Origin: Asterias rubens
Taxonomy: Eukaryota
Length of the DNA: 64,000 bases
Direction of reading: 5' to 3'
Assembly: GCF_902459465.1 (NCBI RefSeq)
Contig: NC_047074.1
Coordinates: 1,240,001 to 1,304,000 of the forward strand
The position numbers were made by a program, and so were the translations under genes. The notes under the pieces were generated by a model. The model was not told the DNA's origin. It did no database searches and was given only the letters and a program-made list of their open reading frames with translations. The stretch's first letter is position 1, and each line of letters begins with the position of its first letter. Shown in pieces: positions 1,331-63,096 of the stretch.

Positions 1331-1450
1331 AATCCTGAAGACGAACAGAGACACTGTTCGAAACGTCGAGACACAGAGCCAACACTCCCATAAAGTGATT
1401 AACAAATTGTTGTACCCGCAAATTTTCTATTTATATATAGTTTCTTCCTA
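1331..1450 (+). ncRNA. Minimal type-I hammerhead ribozyme motif in a Penelope-type short repeat
   Basis: CTGAAGA 1335-1341, stem II GAACAG/CTGTTC, GAAA 1360-1363, C-GTC (palindromic ACGT helix III). Helix I is only 2 bp. The tail is homologous to 62533-62620. Confidence 0.7.
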
Positions 1451-3841: not shown

Positions 3842-4209
3842 AGACAGTGGACACTATTGGTAACTGTCAAAGACCAGTCTTCTCACTTGGTGTATACATA
3901 AAATAACCAATATGTGAAAATTTCAGCTCAATTTGGTCGTCGAAATTGCGAGATAACTATGAAAGAAAAAAACACCATTGCCACACGAAGTTGTGTGCTT
4001 TCAGATCAGATGCTTGATTTCGAGACCTCAAGTTCTATCTGAGGTCTCGAAATCAAATTCGTGGAAAATTTTCGAAAACTAAGTCACTTCAGAGGGAGCA
4101 GTTTCTCACAATATTTTATACTATCATCCTCTCCCCATTACCTGCTACCAAGTAAGGTTTTATGCTAATATAATTTTGAGTAATTACCAATAGTGTCCAA
4201 TGCCCTTAA
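3838..4209. mobile_element. Kolobok-type MITE, main family, tandem to the previous copy
   Basis: Shares the TTAA at 3838-3841; same TIRs; internal gatttcgagacctca hairpin. Confidence 0.8.
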
Positions 4210-4328
4210 GACAAGATGACAGCATTCGGTTTAGGTTAATTGGCTAGCATGTTACCAAAAAATGATGGATTATATTCGAGGAGAGTCAAAGACATACTCA
4301 AAGAGCAATCATACTTTTAAGGTTATGT

Positions 4329-4731
4329 TTAAAGGCACTGGACACTATTGGTAATTACCCCCCAAAAATGCTTAGCATAAAAACTTACTTGGTAACAAGC
4401 AATGGGGAGCTGTTGATAGTATAAAACATTGGGAGAAACGGCTCCCTCTGAAGTAACGTAGTTTTCGAAAGAAGTAATTTTCCACTAAAATATTTGAATT
4501 TGATTTCGAGACCTCAAAGTTATAGATTTTAAGGTCCCGAAATCAAGCATCTGAAAGCACACAACTTAGTGTGACAAGGGTGCTTTTTCTTCCCTTATTA
4601 TCTCGCAACTTCGATGACCAATTAAGTTCAAATTTTCACAGGTTTTTTATTTTTTGGGCATATGTTGAGATACACCAAGCGAGCAGACTGGTCTTTGACA
4701 ATTATTACCAAAGGTGTCCAGTGTATCTTAA
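4329..4731. mobile_element. Kolobok-type MITE, main family, opposite orientation
   Basis: TTAA-AGGCACTGGACACTATTGG ... ggtgtccagtgtatc-TTAA. Confidence 0.8.
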
Positions 4732-5574
4732 GTCTTCTGTGCTATACTGGATGGGATGTTCTGGTCGCCATGTTATGCTTGCTGTAATTCGAATAAAAAT
4801 GTTAACAAGACAGTTCGTATTTTGCCTGTAAGGAGGACACGTCTATGCTATTCCAGGCACAAACTACTTTAGAGAGAAACCACTGAGCCCCCCGTCTGCC
4901 CAAAGACAGGAGACTGTTAGTGGCGTCCCAGCAAGTTATAGGTTGGCTTAAAGGGGGGGGGGGGTGCCTATACGGTGATGTTTCGCATCACTGGATTTAT
5001 GGTTATGGATATCATTATGTTAAGAACCAAAAAAATAGTCGTTATTAGACTAAAAACACTCTAGCAGAAAACTCCCTTGTGACGCCAGTTATTAAGGTAG
5101 CATCTAAAAGTATACTAATCTGTAATCAATGAGGCTGCTATAAATTGTGATGTTTTCTTGCTATTATAACGTCTCCATCAAGTTGTCATTAGTCTACAGA
5201 GAATTCAAATACATGTTCACGTTACAACTATATCTTCATGTAAAAGGAACGTAGACAATGCGGAGGGACGCACAGTGTTTTATTGACATATATTAAAAAC
5301 CCGAAAACGACTATTGCCGCGTAAACTGGTGACTACTGGTCTATATTTGACAAACCTTAGGGACTCAGTCTAAACGTAGTTGCTGCCACGATGGAGCTCC
5401 CGCCTTGCGGATTCTCATCTGAATTCCCATCTGAATTAAAATTTATGTCCCGTTTGAAGCATCCAGTCATCCATGGTATCTGAACTACAATTTATGTCCC
5501 GTTTGAAGCATCTATAGTCATGTTAAGGCAGGGCTTGCCATAGGGGAACAGCATAACTTTACTAAAAAATACGT

Positions 5575-5615
5575 GGTCTAAAGAGAAAGATCTGCTATGA
5601 GTCGAAACGTCGACC
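5575..5615 (+). mobile_element. Decayed hammerhead-like Penelope repeat remnant
   Basis: GGTC...GAGTC-GAAA-C-GTC-GACC gives a 4-bp helix I and the 3' core, but no intact CTGANGA. Confidence 0.35.
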
Positions 5616-8600
5616 CTTGACAATTTTTCAAACTATTTATTGCAACAGCTATGTTAAAAATATTGTTTTACACAGGTCGCTTATGTTAGAGGCTACACCT
5701 TTTCTCAGCCCCCCCCCAAAAAAAAAATAAATAAATCGTGTGTTATCACACATCAAATAAAAGCAAAAACTTGATCCACAAAAGGTATCAAGAAACCCTT
5801 TAAGTCATGATATAAACATTTTGAGGGTTATAGTCCGGGCTTAACTATACTCAATTCTCTAATCAGTTCTGGATTCAGTGTAAATCCACGTCAGAGAGTT
5901 GATTAAAAACCATATAATTCTGTTGCAACCTATATGCTGCACGTGAAACTGTAGAATGATTGGCTACAGAGAAAGAAATATGCTGATATCCAGATCTGCC
6001 AAGTTTCACAATTCCAAAGTAATTACCAGCGGATCCGTCTGGAATCTATCTCAAAATCCCCCAGTTCCTGCTCGACTGGGAATGAAGGGATTTGGTTGCC
6101 TCGGGTGTAACTGCCATCCTTCCCAGTAGGTTGGTTCTACTGCGAGAGAGGCAACGAGTTGATTACTCGATTAAACCGGATGAATATTCTCTCAATTGAA
6201 TTCCAACAAGTCCATTTCAGGGGGACAAACCTTTAGCAATTTATGCTGCCTTCTTAAGCTTAAGTGTCATCAATGTTTTAATAATGGAGGCGTCAATACA
6301 CGACGTTTCGATACGTATAACATGGTCTTCATCTGAAGCATTTGGACGTATAGCTATAATCATGATTTGGCTGAGGTTTATCATTTTTTGTTCACAAAGA
6401 AAACCTCCGTTTTTTGTTTTAATTATCAAATCCGGTTATTTTAATGTTGTTTTATGATATTCAGTATTCCTTTTTTCTTCTTTAAACTTCATTTCTTATA
6501 TTCGTTGTTTATAAATTGTTTATGTTAAAAGCGCAGATTTGAGTCAGAACATAGTAAAATAGTTACACATCACTAAATAATAGTAAATTGTAATTTCAAG
6601 CGAAAACTAAAACCCACTTGTTTAAAGAACAAGTGAGATGTCTTCCATGTCAAATGAGCTTTAAAGTTATTCACGCATCTTCAAGAATTGTTACCAAAGC
6701 CCAATTTGGCATAATGCTGTAAGTGTTTATTGATTTATCGATGAATTGGTCTGTGAAACATCTTGAAGAATTTGATCAAACACCTTGTGCCAGCTCCATC
6801 CTTTGATGCAGCGGCCCGCCAGGCAGGAGTTCAAAGAGGTGTTTGCGGTAGGATAACAACTTTCATGGACAAGCTGAATTGAGTTTAGCCCGACCATGGA
6901 CTTGTGTATGTTGCGATGAGAAGCCAGGCGTGTGTAAGTGGGAGTCAACTTTGACATAGCTGTGGAGGAGGGTAAGATGCTGTGAGAAAAAGGTTTAATA
7001 CTATAATAATAAAACAACAAAGTGAATACTAAAATGTCTAGCTTTTCTAAATATATATTTATACATAAAAGCGAAGAGCGAAACAAAATCACACTATGTG
7101 AGAACTGAATGTCTAATTTAAGGAGTTTTATAACACACACGAAATACATCTGTTAAGGAATAAGTCAAAACTATGACATTTGCCTGCGAGCAAAACTTAT
7201 GTTAGCTTTATTTATCGATTTAAAACCACAATGAAAAAAAATGCCCACACGTTCAGCAAACTCTTGTGTTATTTTTTTTTCAGTTTATGTTAGCTCTCAA
7301 CTGACCTCTTATTAGTTACAGACATAATTTTTTTTTATCGGTTAACCTATAATCTGTGCGGAACAATTGACGACAGAAGATATATGATCAAACAACCCGG
7401 GTGACATTTAATTGCCCCAACACTAACTTTCTAAGCTTTATTTGCGGTCGGAAAGGGTCGGTATATGGCTCACCGCTTTAAAGTTCAATCCACAAACATC
7501 ATTCTTGTCTCTAAAAGAACATAACAAGTATACCTTGAATAATCTCCACTTTGACAATTGAAGGAGCAAAAGGTTACCGTGATTATTATTTGGGACTTTT
7601 CAAACAACATTTGTCCAGCGGTGTTATTCCCAAATGCCCGTATTCAATTTCCCTGCCTTTTTAGAATGAGTCCCCCCGAGGCGAAGCAATGATCCATTTT
7701 TGTCTTCATCTCTTGTTTTGTGAAAACTAAACCCGAGTCTTTCGAGACCTGTATATAATAACTACTCCCCTTTTCGTTTTGTCTATCCCCCATCGATAAT
7801 GCTAACGGATGCTATTATGGCACTATACCACATGTAAAATGCTATCAATCTTTGATCAATGCGTGGGAAGAAACACATTGCGATCGCCAACCCGTTATGT
7901 ACGTCACACTATACCTAGTTACTTATTCACAATAAACCAGTCAAAAGGAAGCTTTCAATAGAGTCTAAGTGTAACTAAATAGTGCGTTCGTACGCATCAA
8001 GTGTCATATTAACATTATAATGTGCCTCCCTCGGGGAACATGCAACATTGGTTGGGACATAATAATGGAACAAAGCTCCACTGAAATGAAATCAACTATT
8101 TATCACAATTCTGCAATTAGTTTTTGCAACAAGACTATTTGGGGAGAAGTTACATTCAATATAATTTCCTTTACAATAATCTAGCCAAGGGAATCACCTT
8201 AAGGGGATGCGACTTTTTGTTTCAGATATCAATATAAACCACAAGGGAAACTGATTGGGTATATTTAATTGTAAGCGGTAACTTGTGACTAAGCAAGTCA
8301 TTGTACCAGACAATATTATTCAAATCTAACTTGCAAATTGCTTGTTAGGGGTCTGTTTAGTGTGGGTGTCACGTACACTTGCCTATAATAACAGATTCTT
8401 TCACCCAGTTCTGTAAACGTCAAGAACGTACCAAGTGCAACAATTTAAAACTGACTTTGACTCCTCTGTTTTAAGTCCCTTGAAGAGCAAAGTGCCGAGT
8501 CCTATTTCGTGTTGAGTGGTAACAAGTTAAGTCTTCAATGGGGAATGCTTGGTCTTCTAAGGCTCGGGGAGATTTTGACTTATTGTTTAAGACAACACAT

Positions 8601-10957: not shown

Positions 10958-11859
10958 GTCTGACGGTTGGAACTGATATCGCAATCCTGACGATTGGAAT
11001 TGACGACAATAAGTCAAGTTTATCAAACTATGAAATGGCTTGTTTCCAGTCCCCACAAATTAGAGAAAACCATATTAAGACCATATCACAATAACTGTAC
11101 GACTACCACGAGCATGCTAATAACACAATCCTTACAACACTTCATGGTGTGCTACTCAAATCCGTCTACAAATCAATTAGGAGAGTGCGTAACAATAGCT
11201 CGCCATTATCAAAATACGCTGAAATTGGTCATATATTTACTCACATTTTGTCCATCTTCCCCATAATAGCTCCATTGAACACAGAATCATTTGCTAAAAG
11301 CCATTTTGTATACGGGGAGATTGGGATTGATTTTTGGAAGGTATTTTGTTGAGGATGGCTACGTCATGAGGGATGTACGGAACTGCAAAAGAGTGGTATT
11401 TTTAGGATTTATCTTTAAAGTAGTTTTCATGGTGTTATATTTATCTACGCAGTACATATACACCAGTTGAACAAGAGACATGAAAGTAATTAAATTAATA
11501 TTGTATTGTGTCTCCTAATGCGATGACATAAATCACATCTATAATTAACGGCAATGTGTTGTTCTATCAGGTCAGTACTCTAAACAATAAATTAATTGCA
11601 CGAAAACAAAAATGCTACCACCGGTACGGCACACACATTATCAAAAATGCATCCGCATGGAGCCGTCTTTTGTTCTTTCCTTTGTCCATTCACTTAACGG
11701 TTTCCCGTAGACTTTGTAGACAATTTTCCTTGTAGATTTCCACAGACAGTCATTAAGAATTCTCCTAATGGAGACCGTTTGTTTTTGCCTATTTTGTTTT
11801 TGTACAGACAATGAGCACGCCTCATTCAATCTCACGACACTTTCTAACATTATCCTTTT

Positions 11860-12671: not shown

Positions 12672-13207
12672 TTAAAGGCCCTGTACACTATTGAAAATTC
12701 ATTTAAAAAATAATAAGCATAAAAGACTTAAAGACACTAGACACTATTGGTAATTGTCAAAGACCAGTCTTCTCACTCGGTGTTTCTCAGCAACTGCATA
12801 AAATAACAAACCTGTGAAAATTTGAGCTAGATGGGCGTCGAAGTTGCGAGATAATATTGAAAGAAAAAATATCCTTGTCACACAAAGTTGTGTGCTTTCA
12901 GAATGCTTGATTTCGAGACCTCAAATTCTAAACTTGAGGTCTCGAAATCAAATTCGTGGAAAATTACTTCTTTCTCGAAAACTACGTTACTTCAGAGGGA
13001 GCCGTTTCTCACAATGTTGTATACTATCAACCTATCCCCATTACTCGTTACCAATAGAGGTTTTATGCTGATAATTATTTTGAGTAATTACAAACACTAG
13101 TGTCCACTGCCTTTACAAGCAAAAAAGAGCTGTTGATGATAATTATAAAACATTCTGTGAAACGGCTTCCTCTGGAGAACGTAATTATTGAGAAAGAGAG
13201 CAAATTC
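12672..13207. mobile_element. Nested Kolobok-type MITEs (inner copy 12728-13115 in opposite orientation)
   Basis: The outer consensus agcataaaa...caagcaa.ggagagctgttga resumes after the inner complete copy. Confidence 0.7.
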
Positions 13208-13249: not shown

Positions 13250-13430
13250 TGTCTCCACTGAGTATCGCAAGCAGTATACCTAAACGCGTCTGCAAATTTA
13301 AACAGATTCAACACCGATACAACACCGGCTCTTTACACTACAAAAGAGATTTACAAATGGTTGTACTCGCACAGGTTTGCTTTTTTACTTTTTTTTACCA
13401 CACCATGCAAAGCTTCAAACAATACTAAAC
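13250..13430 (+). mobile_element. Degenerate member of the hammerhead/stem-loop repeat family
   Basis: Decayed core CTGAGTA...AAACGCGTC (13258-13290), ACCGGCTCTTT-ACACT-A-CAAAAGAGA (13324-13349), shared tail atggttgtactcgca and cacaccatgcaaagcttcaaac. Confidence 0.55.
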
Positions 13431-21744: not shown

Positions 21745-22000
21745 TGATTTGAGGCATTGCATGGTAAGGTATCAATATATATTTGGTTTGCGGTAACACC
21801 ATGTGTGTACTCTTGCCAGGTAGAGTTTGTTCCTTAAATAACTGTCTTGCTATGTATTCTAGTACACCGTAGTAGGTTATCCGCTTTTTTCGGGAGACCT
21901 ATCAGTTCTGAAAAAAACCTGTCCTGCTTGTTACCTACTACCTGGGCGGAAGGTAATAAATCGGCTGGGACTACTACTTTCGCTTTAGGATCGTTAATAA
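21745..22000 (-). mobile_element. Dispersed repeat sharing the catggtgttaccgcaaacc tail; partial copies at ~1860-1990 and ~10590-10695
   Basis: Shared blocks ggtttgcggtaacaccatgtgtg and aactgtcttgc...ttctactacc occur at three loci. Confidence 0.55.
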
Positions 22001-24227: not shown

Positions 24228-24611
24228 TGAAAGGATCACGTTCCCTGGGATCGGACGAGTTGGCTTTTGAAAAGCGTCTGTAATCGTTTTTATAAAATGC
24301 ATATGGTTAGAAATATGTTGTAACAGTAGAATACAATGATCCACACAGGTATTATTTGAAATTGCACCTTTTACGTCGCGAACTAACACGGTCGGCCATT
24401 TATGGGAGTCCAAAATTTAACTCACATATTAATGGTCGAACGTGTTAGTTGAAGAGGTAAAAGGAAAACCACGCAATTTCGAGTGATACTTGTGTGGATC
24501 AATGTATTCTACTTTTAAAACATCTTTCTAACCATATGCATTTTATAACAAACGGTTCAAAACGCTTTGTTAAAGACCAACTCGTCCGATCCAAGGCAAC
24601 GGGTTCCTTAA
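24228..24611. mobile_element. Fold-back (whole-length inverted repeat) MITE, Kolobok-like ends
   Basis: The arms are reverse complements along their length, e.g. ggatcggacgagttgg / ccaactcgtccgatcc and aaatgcatatggttaga / tctaaccatatgcattt. Confidence 0.78.
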
Positions 24612-26991: not shown

Positions 26992-27313
26992 CAGCTCATT
27001 AAAGAACATGAAAAGGGAATTACTGAACATAAATACACAGTCTAACTAAAGACAATTATTTGAAGATTGAACAAACTAACTTATTGAAAAGTAATGCAGC
27101 TCTATTTAGTAGTTACAAATTGAAGAGAAGCGCTATAAACCGATGATCCCAATGCTGAGTTGACATTATCATTAGTTAGCATAACGTGAATAATTTTGTT
27201 CGTGTTGATTGCTTTCAGTTTTAAGACACTCAGGCTGTCATCAACAATTCATATCGTTGTTTTTTGATCGACAATAGAACTGCAAATAAAACAAACTGCG
27301 AACAAAACTGCTC

Positions 27314-27699
27314 TTAAAGGCAGTGGACACTATTGGTAATTGTCAAAGACTAGCCTTCGCAGTTGGTGTATCTCAAAATATGCATAAAATAACTAACCTG
27401 TGAAAATTTGAGCTCAATCGGTCATCGAAGTTGCGAGATAATAAAGAAAGAAAAAACACCCTTGTCACACGAAGTTGTGTGCGTTTAGATGGTTGATTTC
27501 GAGACCTCAAGTTCTAAACTTGAGGTCTCGAAATCAAATTCGTGGAAAATTACATCTATCTCGAAAACTACTCCACTTCAGAGGGAGCCGTTTCTCACAA
27601 TGTTTTATACTGCCAACCTCTCCCCATTACTCTTTACCAAGTGAGGTTTAATGCTAATAATTATTTTGAGTAATTACCAATAGTGTCCACTGCCTTTAA
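27314..27699. mobile_element. Kolobok-type MITE, complete near-consensus copy
   Basis: TTAA-AGGCAGTGGACACTATTGGTAATT ... AATTACCAATAGTGTCCACTGCCT-TTAA, perfect long TIRs. Confidence 0.88.
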
Positions 27700-29592: not shown

Positions 29593-29964
29593 TAATTACT
29601 CAAAATAATTATGAGCATATAACCTTACTTGGAAACGAGTAATGAGGAGCTGTTGATAGTATAAAACATTGTGAAAAACAGCTCCCTAGCCCTCTGAAGT
29701 AACATAGTGTTCGAGAAAGAAGTAATTTCCACGAATGAGATTTCGAGACCTCAGATTTATAATTTGAGGTCTCGAAATCAAGCATCTGAAAGCACACAAC
29801 TTCGTCTGACAAGGGTGTTTTTTCTTTCATTATTATCTCACAACTTCGACGACCAATTGAGCTCAAATTTTCACAGGTTTGTTATTTTTTTGCGCATATG
29901 TTGAGATACCCCAAGTGAGAAGACCGGTCTTTGACAATTACCAATAGTGTCCAGTGTATTTTAA
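29593..29964. mobile_element. Kolobok-type MITE
   Basis: Internal consensus and right TIR present; left TIR decayed. Confidence 0.75.
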
Positions 29965-32680: not shown

Positions 32681-33067
32681 AGGCAGTGGACACTATTGGT
32701 AATTACTCAAAATAATTATTAGCATAAAACCTTACTTGGTAACGAGTAATGAGGAGAGGTTGATAGTATAAAATATTGTGAGAAACGGCTCTCTCTGTAG
32801 TGACGTAGTTTTCAAGAAAGAAGTAATTTTCCACGAATTTCATTTCGATACCTCAGATTTAGAACTTGAGGTCTCGAAATCAACCATCTAAACACACACA
32901 CCTTCGTGTGACAAGGGTGTTTTTTTTTTTCTTTCATTCATATCTCGCAAGTTCGATGACCGATTGAGCTTAAATTTTCACAGGTTCATTACTTTATGCA
33001 TATGTTGAGATACACCAACTGTGTAGGCTAGTCTTTGACAATTGCCAATAGTGTCCACGGCCTTTAA
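32681..33067. mobile_element. Kolobok-type MITE
   Basis: AGGCAGTGGACACTATTGGTAATT ... aatagtgtccacggcct-TTAA. Confidence 0.8.
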
Positions 33068-33411
33068 GCGGATTGTCCTCTTTACTTGATAACAAATTTA
33101 CGTATATCGTGAGATGTGATTGTAACTAATCCTGCAAGATGCTGTTACACAAACAGTCACTCATAATTACACAAGATCCTCACCACGCTTACACTTCCAC
33201 AGACTAACTCAAGTGAACACAAACAACAAGGAAGAGTCATACGTTGTCATCACAGTTCCTTACCAAATGATTAATAATGTTTAGGAACAAGTGCCGCTGT
33301 ACAAGGCTGTTTGACAATTGTTTATATGTATTTCATATTCAGAACCAAAACCAACAACCTGAAATCCGAAATACATGCACACTTTTGCAAGATGATGTTT
33401 ATTCTTAGTGA

Positions 33412-39801: not shown

Positions 39802-40195
39802 TTAAAGACACATGGACACCTACGGTAACTGTAATAGACCAGTCTTCCCACTTGGTGTATCTCAACATATGCACAAAATAAAAAACCTGTGAAAATTTGA
39901 ACATAATTGGACGTCGAAGTTGTAGGATAGTAATGGAAGAAAAACCTACCTTGTTACACGAAGTTGTGTTTCAGATGCTTGAATTCAAGACATCAAAATC
40001 AAATTCTGAGGGCTCGAAATCAAATTTAAATATTTTAGAGAGAAATTACTTCTTTCTCTAAAACGACGTTACTTCAGAGGGAGACGTTTTTCACAATGTT
40101 GTATGATATCAACATCTCTACATTGATCGCTAACAAGTAAGTTTTTATGTTAACAATTATTTTGAGCGATTACCAATAGTATTTAGTGCCTTTAA
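39802..40195. mobile_element. Kolobok-type MITE
   Basis: TTAA-AGACACATGGACAC ... tagtgcct-TTAA. Confidence 0.75.
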
Positions 40196-51229: not shown

Positions 51230-51365
51230 AAGGTGGGAGTATTTGTTGGTGGTTTGCGGTAGCACCGTGTGTATACTCTCCTTTGAGTAGTGTTAGTAAG
51301 GTGAGACAAGCTAGTGTTCGACAACTCGACGTTTCGATCAGTATGCTCTAATCGTCTTCAGGAGA
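51230..51365 (-). ncRNA. Minimal hammerhead ribozyme motif (intact core) in a Penelope-type repeat, antisense in the intron
   Basis: Minus strand reads TCTC-CTGAAGA-C-GATTAG-agcata-CTGATC-GAAA-C-GTC-GAG (51365-51325), then tail ...cacacggtgctaccgcaaacc. Confidence 0.72.
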
Positions 51366-62100: not shown

Positions 62101-62355
62101 CGGGGGTGTCGTGGCCGAATGGTCTAGGGTGGTGGACTCAAAATCTATAATTTCTAGAATGAGAGTTCGAATCATGGCCTGCTCAGTGGCGACACTTGTG
62201 TTCTTGAGCATAATTGCTTCTCTCCGCTCAGGAGTGCAAACGGGTACCGGTGAGAGCTTAGGAGTAACCTGCAACGGACTGACATCCTGACCATGGAGAA
62301 TACTGACAAGGAAACCGGATATAAACGCAGGCTTGGTGAGCTATAATGGCTCGGG
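62101..62355 (+). mobile_element. tRNA-derived SINE with a CORE-like block
   Basis: gtcgtggccgaatggtctag A-box, gttcgaatc B-box, gacacttgtgttcttgagc...ctctccgctcaggagtgcaaacgggtacc. Confidence 0.65.
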
Positions 62356-62483
62356 ACGGACTTTGTTCTACTGTTCGAAAATTATGGCGAATGCACTCGT
62401 TATCGATTACATAACTTCTTCCTAATCAAATGCTAGTAATGTTTGAAGTTTTGCATGGTGTGCAGGAGAGTTAGGGAAAAACC

Positions 62484-62620
62484 TCTGCTCGTCTTCTCCT
62501 GAAGACGAGCAGAATATACTGTTCGAAGCGTCGAGACCAAACCGGTTCTTCTCGGAGCCAACACTCACAAGAGACTAACTCATGGTTGTACCCGCTAAGT
62601 TTACTATTTATTTATAGTTT
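62484..62620 (+). ncRNA. Hammerhead motif (GAAA changed to GAAG) plus histone-type stem-loop in a Penelope-type repeat
   Basis: TCTC-CTGAAGA(62499-62505)-C-GAGCAG-aatata-CTGTTC-GAAG-C-GTC-GAGA, then GGTTCT-TCTC-GGAGCC at 62544-62559 and AACAC. Confidence 0.7.
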
Positions 62621-63096
62621 CTCCCTGGTCAAACGTTGTTTAGTTACAGCTGAGTTTGAGAGGGGGAGACCCACGTGGTGTTGTCTTGTAATTCTTGTTT
62701 CAAAATTGCTGTCATTAATTTGCCACAAAAATTACCACCAGCAACTCCACACCAAAGAAATAAATTGCATATTTATTGCAATCTGTTTATGTTGGTATTT
62801 TGGGGGTGGGAAAGAAAGTTGAAACAAACCTCAAAAACAACAAACAAAATGGAATGAGTGGATGTTTTTATGGTTTGAAAACCAGCGCCGTTGGCAATTA
62901 CTCCAAAACGAACAGCTGTTTTTAAACTGCGAGAAAAATTCAGACAACCCAGCAATCGCGAAAAGAAAAAAAAAAAAAAACCACGGATAGCTGTCAGGAG
63001 CAACAAGAGGCAGTTTGCGAAGTGAAAGGAAGAAGACGCTGGATAAAAAGTAAAAACAACAGCGTCTCTGTGACAGCATTAAAGTCTTACCAATCT

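Follow-up and report, generated by a model that had tools for sequence, protein, structure and literature searches.

A minimal hammerhead and a histone-type stem-loop side by side in Penelope-like repeats of echinoderms

Hammerhead ribozymes are known constituents of the pLTRs of Penelope-like retrotransposons (PLEs). In endonuclease-positive (EN+) PLEs, these minimal hammerheads carry an extra base between positions 9 and 10.1, a G10.1-C11.1 pair and a long helix II, together with a helix I of 4 bp, palindromic positions 15.2/16.2 and no loop 3; as monomers, they show hardly any activity (Cervera & de la Pena 2014, PMC4209133). An optional tail of 30-40 bp has been described as well (Craig et al. 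2021, PMC8557442). The ribozyme of the family studied here shows all the traits listed in PMC4209133, and the family shares with these elements the optional tail extension and the head-to-head inverted copies. A histone stem-loop or a U7-type element beside the ribozyme is mentioned in neither paper; the word 'histone' is absent from PMC4209133 and the word 'stem-loop' from PMC8557442. In the sea-star and sea-urchin lineages described below, by contrast, a histone module is fixed 10-11 nt past the cleavage site.

For the Poseidon PLE of Anolis (PAc), it was reported that reverse transcription starts internally near the ORF start, that both DNA strands are primed and that the ribozyme is protein-assisted (PMC11167929); a histone stem-loop is not mentioned there either. 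The echinoderm family has in common with PAc a hammerhead near the pLTR-ORF junction, copies that end shortly inside the ORF, two end forms differing by the 30-40 bp tail, and the use of both strands, which leads to inverted pairs. The PAc ORF, however, begins inside the ribozyme and the stem-loop near its reverse transcription start is merely AC-rich, whereas in the echinoderm family an untranslated region of about 100 nt, including the histone-type signal, separates the ribozyme from the ORF start. Animal non-LTR retrozymes (bioRxiv 10.64898/2026.07.22.740005) are tandem hammerhead repeats and likewise non-autonomous derivatives of PLE pLTRs; in the present family, head-to-tail joints with periods of 48, 71 and 73 nt occur in some contigs. 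The copy described here differs from them in being a single dispersed unit and not an array.

To our knowledge, the histone stem-loop has been treated in animals as a private mark of replication-dependent histone mRNAs. With the 3' end of these mRNAs (RF00032), the family shares a 6-bp stem of the form GG...U-A, a UUUC or UUUU loop, A/C-rich flanks and a purine-rich element 9-11 nt downstream. It differs in that the signal lies in a retrotransposon tail and not after a histone ORF, in its very many dispersed copies, in a 3' flank that reads mostly AACAC and not ACCA or ACCCA, and in Rfam scores of 23-33 bits for most copies, set against a threshold of 34. Histone genes were found neither in the window nor in the loci fetched for comparison. 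Full-text literature searches retrieved no report joining a PLE hammerhead with a histone stem-loop, or SLBP with a retrotransposon or transposable element, and no paper on CAAGAAAGA with U7 snRNA and histone. The initial annotation likewise pointed to no earlier description of the combination. What appears to be new, in so far as no paper was found, is the histone signal adjoining the ribozyme. Added here are the family pile-up, the finding that sea urchins have the module too, with compensatory stems and their exact downstream element, its presence in both UTRs and the match of the copy ends to the internal-initiation model.

The focal copy and its Penelope-like origin

The window, i.e. the whole 64-kb stretch of DNA that was analyzed, contains the focal copy of the repeat at 62494-62622 (Table 1). 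The strings quoted in the initial annotation are present at 62499-62574, from 13324 onwards and at 1374-1389. The limits of the copy were evident from contigs of four public runs aligned to 62400-62720 at 80% likeness or more. These runs were X1 (DNA, probable source organism), two close relatives and one (doubtful) RNA library of a relative; three related organisms stand behind the four runs. Contigs stacked on 62494-62622 only (1655, 1439, 1165 and 236 in the four runs), with the flanks at single-copy depth. The summed contig depth rose from about 150-175 in the flanks up to 700,000 at 62488-62630 and came back down after 62630, and loose contig ends were stacked at 62494/5 and at 62622. In a self-comparison of the window, the copy was 74% identical to 1333-1449.

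The focal locus is an ordinary dead copy, and the interest lies in the family. Judged from its letters, the copy is dead: core position 15.1 of the hammerhead is a G, the top pair of the stem-loop is U.G and the downstream element has diverged. It is an old 5'-truncated insertion made by target-primed reverse transcription, with an inverted partner at 62434-62462. This partner lies 32 nt upstream of the focal copy, is 93% identical to the reverse complement of 13399-13427 and coincides with raised contig depth at 62433-62465. Together with the 13-nt inverted duplicate at the 5' junction, it looks like the scar of two-strand priming or snap-back in one insertion event. The predicted fold of 62480-62575 pairs both 13-nt arms (minimum free energy of the whole 96-nt stretch −35.8 kcal/mol, z-score −4.7), and the duplicate would, in this fold, trap the 5' half of the hammerhead in a hairpin. 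Since a contig from a relative, with 7 differences, extends from the left flank through the repeat, the insertion is older than the split of these species.

As far as sequence features can tell, the repeat is almost certainly the pLTR/tail of an EN+ PLE, and the dispersed retro-repeat of Penelope-like origin proposed in the initial annotation is borne out by homologues with reverse transcriptase (RT) and GIY-YIG domains and by hammerhead-bearing pLTRs. A pattern scan of metagenome contigs for a hammerhead plus a perfect stem-loop gave nine loci (L001-L009) with a common layout and a common longer upstream sequence; because they were selected for the perfect stem-loop, they are left uncounted as evidence of its conservation. 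In L001, an open frame of 325 residues ends 31 nt before the hammerhead and matches GIY-YIG at 1.5e-6. Homologues of this frame carry RVT_1, HTH_animal and GIY-YIG domains and come from Asterias rubens, A. amurensis, Patiria, Acanthaster, Lytechinus, Diadema and the crinoid Anneissia. A nearly full element was found in Patiria (L011). It has an identical 250-nt pLTR on either side of the ORF (4200-4450 and 7120-7370), each with CTGAAGA...GAACGTC and a hairpin with an A.C pair at the stem foot. The ORF begins at CACCATGCAAAGC, whose ATG opens a frame of 396 amino acids; after a frameshift, 5518-7008 forms one frame with RVT_1 (1.2e-9) and GIY-YIG (2.9e-5). The stem of this full-length copy is weakened and its downstream element degenerate.

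The order of the module is ORF stop, minimal hammerhead, 10-11 nt, stem-loop, 9-11 nt, purine-rich downstream element, CATGGTKGTACC, AT-rich spacer and ORF start. It is present in both the 5' and the 3' pLTR and lies, in the full-length Patiria copy, 70-130 nt upstream of the ORF start. Genomic copies extend 60-95 nt past the stem-loop. Some stop short of the ATG (window 62622), others some 20 nt past it (MQSFKHH..; window 13405, L001, L006, L010, L015); the difference is the PLE tail of PMC8557442, which PMC11167929 accounts for by internal initiation of reverse transcription close to the ORF start. Head-to-head inverted pairs were observed in L011, L015, L017 and L019, and in the window as 62434-62462 (−) beside 62494-62622 (+); the two-strand priming described in PMC11167929 fits both the pairs in these loci and the fragment in the window. 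The family thus has the traits of EN+ PLEs, namely a single ORF with RT and C-terminal GIY-YIG, hammerhead-bearing pLTRs, an optional tail and head-to-head insertions.

Table 1. Coordinates of the focal copy, of its relatives in the window and of positions at which the family majority differs from the focal copy (shares from X1)
Feature	Position	Strand	Description
Whole repeat copy	62494..62622	+	5'-truncated short-form pLTR/tail of a Penelope-like element (almost certain), without ORF
Helix I, 5' strand UCUC	62495..62498	+	pairs with GAGA 62533-62536
Minimal type-I hammerhead	62499..62532	+	CUGAAGA, extra C, helix II GAGCAG/CUGUUC, GAAG, palindromic CG and UC; CTGAAGA 62499-62505, helix II 62506-62512/62519-62525, then GAAG-C-GTC with GTC at 62530-62532
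Decayed histone-type stem-loop GGUUCU-UCUC-GGAGCC	62544..62559	+	two G.U pairs (top pair and pair 3); spacer of 11 nt from GTC
A/C-rich 3' flank AACAC	62560..62564	+	presumed zone of histone-type cut; elsewhere in the family AACAC, ACCAC or ACACA
Diverged purine-rich downstream element CAAGAGA	62568..62574	+	CAAAAGAGA in most copies
Conserved tail motif CATGGTTGTACCCGC	62581..62595	+	kept even in lineages without the stem-loop
AT-rich end of short-form tail	62596..62622	+	ends ahead of the ORF start codon, from loose ends behind 62622 and comparison with longer copies
Inverted tail-extension fragment with ORF start motif CACCATGCAAAAC	62434..62462	-	head-to-head partner of 62494-62622
13-nt inverted duplicate of 62501-62513	62484..62496	.	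5' junction; self match, opposite strand
Second family copy	1333..1449	+	hammerhead 1335-1367, intact core; 5' half of stem-loop deleted
Third family copy, long tail form	13321..13427	+	reaches the ORF start, ATG at 13405
Related-subfamily hammerhead	51328..51361	-	intact core; helix II CGATTAG/CTGATCG, a compensatory variant; no stem-loop after it
Focal A, majority G (96%)	62514		helix II loop
Focal G, majority A (96%)	62528		hammerhead core position 15.1
Focal T, majority C (96%)	62546		stem-loop
Focal C, majority T (79%)	62551		loop position 2
Focal G, majority A (96%)	62554		stem-loop

Ribozyme, stem-loop and downstream element in the family

The core GAAG of the focal hammerhead departs from the consensus CUGANGA...GAAA...UH, whereas 96% of the family and the copies at 1335 and 51361 read GAAA. 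In aligned family units, helix II was paired to 93.5%, with three pairs changed on both sides, and helix I to 91.7% across 16 copies. The window contains three instances of CTGANGA..GAARCGTC (1335+, 51361−, 62499+), against 0.00 expected from shuffles, and helix II differs among the three copies by compensatory changes. Rfam hammerhead models gave no match at gathering score, either in the window or in five of the 20 fetched loci; laxer limits, E up to 10 for 62300-62800 and E up to 1 or 10 for the other 15 loci, brought none either. These models expect a closed helix III, which is absent in minimal hammerheads (PMC4209133); for loop-less hammerheads of this kind, the misses are uninformative.

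The stem-loop of the focal copy differs from the features of RF00032 in having U.G at the top pair and at pair 3 and a UCUC loop. A scan of the 64-kb window with Rfam at gathering score gave zero matches; in a lax scan, the Histone3 model scored the focal hairpin at 15.0 bits (E 0.48; gathering score 34), and its fold was no better than that of shuffled sequence (z-score −1.0). The picture changes with the family. Majority shares quoted here are those of X1, with which the other three runs agree. The majority letters at 62546, 62551 and 62554 restore the canonical GGCTCT-TTTC-AGAGCC (GGCTCTTTTCAGAGCC; as RNA GGCUCUUUUCAGAGCC), so that the typical member has both the canonical ribozyme core GAAA and a canonical histone stem-loop. 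The initial annotation had rebuilt this 16-mer by overlaying the half-hairpins of two other copies, ACCGGCTCTTT from 13324 and CAGAGCCAACACTCCC at 1374-1389, and the majority in four runs reads exactly that. The majority also keeps the U-A top pair and a UUUC loop, on which the same reading had been staked. Its order of hammerhead, histone stem-loop and U7-type element holds for the family; in the focal copy, from which it was drawn, the three parts are decayed, as seen from the core G, the U.G top pair and the diverged element. The chief variation left in the hairpin is T/C at loop position 2. Histone stem-loops tolerate variation at this position. Overall, variation of the stem-loop in the pile-up is not above that of the ribozyme core. 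One RNA contig of 3102 nt carries the entire unit internally, i.e. as read-through.

Our initial reading, then considered quite probable, took the hairpin at 62544-62559 for a chance resemblance found in this copy alone; it was rejected by the family majority in the four runs. The low Rfam score, the unremarkable fold and the lack of a complete hairpin in the other window copies had spoken for it; against the canonical majority and independent copies in seven other species or samples, its probability is now practically negligible.

Loci from other echinoderms were fetched by protein identity alone, and the stem-loop had no part in their choice. They contain nine strict stem-loops in 143,697 bases, against 0.055 in shuffles, and all nine lie in PLE tails. 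The module was found in elements of Asterias, Patiria, Acanthaster, Lytechinus and Diadema. The conservation argument is built on the family pile-up and these protein-fetched loci, whereas the pair counts come from 16 aligned units. In the latter, the six stem pairs are paired to 100%, and pairs 3 and 4 change on both sides: the stem reads GGCTCT/AGAGCC in Asterias and the window genome, GGTTCT/AGAACC in Patiria and Acanthaster, and GGTCCT/AGGACC in Lytechinus. A further stem, GGCCCT/AGGGCC, was found in Diadema setosum. Pairs G1-C, G2-C, C5-G and U6-A are invariant in the aligned units outside the decayed window copy. Loop positions U1 and U3 were demanded by the motif search, and their constancy is not independent evidence. 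All stem and loop features of RF00032 are found in the family majority and in at least 20 other copies. Scoring with the Rfam models, which the initial annotation had suggested, gave a divided result. Four copies from Patiria and Asterias amurensis loci reached 35.6-39.6 bits with Histone3 and passed the gathering score of 34; the others stayed below it, at 23.4-33 bits in sea stars and 24-29 bits in sea urchins, as did the focal copy, and the hammerhead models were without a match.

The distance from the cleavage site to the stem is 10-11 nt and that from the stem to the downstream element 9-11 nt, while the spacer sequences differ between the classes. As downstream element, Lytechinus and Diadema have the exact CAAGAAAGA and sea stars CAAAAGAGA or CAGAAAAGA; the contrast between sea stars and urchins comes down to AAAAGAG versus AAGAAAGA. 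We take CAAGAAAGA to be the classical sea-urchin histone downstream element, to which the initial annotation also refers. That CAAAAGAGA is the usual form in the family of the window was seen from the consensus of loose ends behind 62566 and from the majority letters at 62575, 62577 and 62580. The stem-loop is kept in sea stars and sea urchins alike, in elements with protein identities of no more than about 50%. It is absent after the hammerhead at window 51328-51361, from L014 (crinoid) and from L016 (Lytechinus, another PLE family). The tail motif CATGGTTGTACCCGC is likely a recognition region for the protein of the element.

Some loci showed other arrangements. In the crinoid Anneissia japonica (L018, 6773-6900, +), a PLE tail with a hammerhead and the motif CACATGGTGTACCG has a 9-bp A/U-rich hairpin (GGTTTTTAT/ATAAAAACC) in the slot of the stem-loop. 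A different PLE family forms a head-to-head pair in Diadema antillarum (L019, 7812-8068, −, and 11316-11572, +), with a perfect GGTCCTTTTCAGGACC 209 nt past the hammerhead, no clear downstream element and a Histone3 score of 29.1 bits. In Lytechinus pictus (L020, 15344-15400, +), a perfect GGTCCTTTTCAGGACC precedes CAAAAGAAT and ATGTGGTGTACC, and no hammerhead could be recognised upstream of it; this unit is either a truncated copy or another subfamily.

A possible role in histone-type 3'-end formation

The stem-loop and the downstream element may form a working histone-type 3'-processing signal, a proposition drawn from their sequence for which we consider the case evenly balanced. SLBP and the U7 snRNP would then cut the element transcript 4-5 nt past the stem in the 3' pLTR, and the product would be an mRNA that lacks a poly(A) tail and is bound by SLBP, in cells well supplied with this machinery such as those of eggs and early embryos or cells in S phase. 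Uncut RNA reading on into the tail would be the template, because PLE reverse transcription starts internally near the ORF start. Copies keep 60-95 nt past the stem-loop, which likewise implies that the template must be RNA not cut at the histone site. The signal would in this way split transcripts into message and template. The hammerhead would not normally remove the stem-loop from the RNA, because the minimal hammerhead is nearly inactive as a monomer. A self-cleaved form as template, which the initial annotation had envisaged, is not indicated, given the length that copies keep past the stem-loop and the presence of the module in the 5' UTR too. The downstream element, at a fixed distance and specific for each class, argues for U7-dependent cleavage over SLBP binding alone.

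Several points speak against such a 3'-end role. A working signal in the 5' pLTR would sever the ORF unless transcription starts downstream of it, and an active hammerhead, being upstream of the stem-loop, would detach the latter from the mRNA. Some related PLE lineages are without the stem-loop, and most copies score under the Rfam threshold. Taken as a whole, the insertion of a dead PLE tail combined with histone-type 3' processing of the element RNA is the best explanation we can offer, and we regard it as somewhat probable. The wider proposal that an echinoderm PLE lineage took over the complete histone pre-mRNA signal is more tentative, and we lean slightly against it. According to this proposal, the lineage would use SLBP and U7 for a tail-less mRNA stable in eggs and S phase and uncut RNA as template, and its copies would constitute a pool of end signals for host genes or compete for SLBP and U7.

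The position of the module in the upstream pLTR, 70-130 nt before the ORF start in the full-length Patiria copy, could also point to a role at the 5' end. Hammerhead cleavage there would yield an uncapped RNA whose 5'-OH end lies 10-11 nt ahead of the stem-loop and some 100 nt ahead of the start codon; SLBP bound to it would shield the RNA and stand in for the cap in recruiting translation factors. A cleavage-to-stem distance held at 10-11 nt while the spacer sequence varies by class would be in line with this, as would the report that a PLE ribozyme is protein-assisted (PMC11167929). SLBP binding alone, however, needs no downstream element, yet the element is kept, at a fixed distance and in class-specific form. 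PLE hammerheads moreover cleave poorly, no RNA ends were seen at the cleavage site in Anolis (PMC11167929), and SLBP acting from a 5' position has no established mechanism. We consider this role unlikely. The stem-loop might otherwise serve the PLE protein itself, as an element-specific hairpin for RNA recognition or for positioning the internal RT start; its likeness to histone signals would then be a relic of capture or a convergence, without a role for SLBP or U7. Reverse transcription in Anolis does start in an AC-rich stem-loop downstream of the hammerhead (PMC11167929), the crinoid tail of L018 has a different hairpin in the same slot, and in L019 the stem-loop is 209 nt from the hammerhead and has no clear downstream element. 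Copies end, however, 60-95 nt past the stem-loop and not inside it. The GG base, the U-A top and loop U1/U3 (the latter required by the search), which are critical for SLBP, are invariant while the stem interior covaries, and an RT-binding site would not be expected to match CAAGAAAGA exactly, with the correct spacing, in two genera of urchins. On balance, this second possibility is quite unlikely.

A histone signal acquired from a histone transcript in a single template switch and retained as a functionless passenger would be compatible with reports that PLEs retrotranspose host sequences in trans, and with the several lineages that lost the stem-loop or are without it. Such a passenger would not be expected to be kept across sea stars and urchins at about 50% protein identity, to be accompanied by compensatory changes in the stem, by spacings that stay fixed and by a downstream element particular to each class, or to vary in the pile-up no more than the ribozyme core. 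We regard this as decidedly improbable and retain histone-type 3' processing as the preferred reading.

With the full signal in very many dispersed copies, the family would be the first known case of a mobile element that uses the histone 3'-end pathway or at least spreads it. It offers a concrete answer to the question of how PLE transcripts, whose copies lack a poly(A) tail, could get their 3' end. It also suggests a route by which a transposon may link its expression to S phase, to eggs or to cleavage-stage embryos, and host genes are predicted to be able to acquire new histone-type ends from it.

Arrays and further repeats in the window

Head-to-tail arrays, with periods of 48, 71 and 73 nt, make up some contigs of the family. 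Where the period is 71 or 73 nt, position 62562 or 62564 is joined to 62492, and the unit starts just ahead of the hammerhead. The unit edge of these two forms is 3-5 nt past the stem, where histone pre-mRNA is cut.

As for the other copies within the window, that at 1333-1449 retains the half-hairpin CAGAGCC at 1374-1380, and that at 13321-13427 has lost the 3' half of the stem-loop and has no recognisable hammerhead. The hammerhead at 51328-51361 belongs to a longer stretch, 51250-51361 (−), in which it is followed by a tail (..CACGGTGCTACCGCAAACC) without stem-loop; this represents a stem-loop-less subfamily in the same genome. Another PLE tail type, ACACACATGGTGTTACC..CATGCAATGCCTCAAATC, is present in two copies that are 88% identical (1921-1986, +, and 21746-21809, −); both are truncated, without hammerhead and without stem-loop.

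The DNA just upstream of the 1335 hammerhead copy (1118-1322) is part of another repeat, which recurs with 74-78% identity as an inverted pair at 24237-24426 and 24431-24607. The commonest repeat of the window is an interspersed one of about 390 bp, with 69-88% identity and in both orientations, found at 12727-13115 and in at least 15 other places (e.g. 27313-27698, 29593-29961, 32681-33068, 4330-4743 and 39802-40194).
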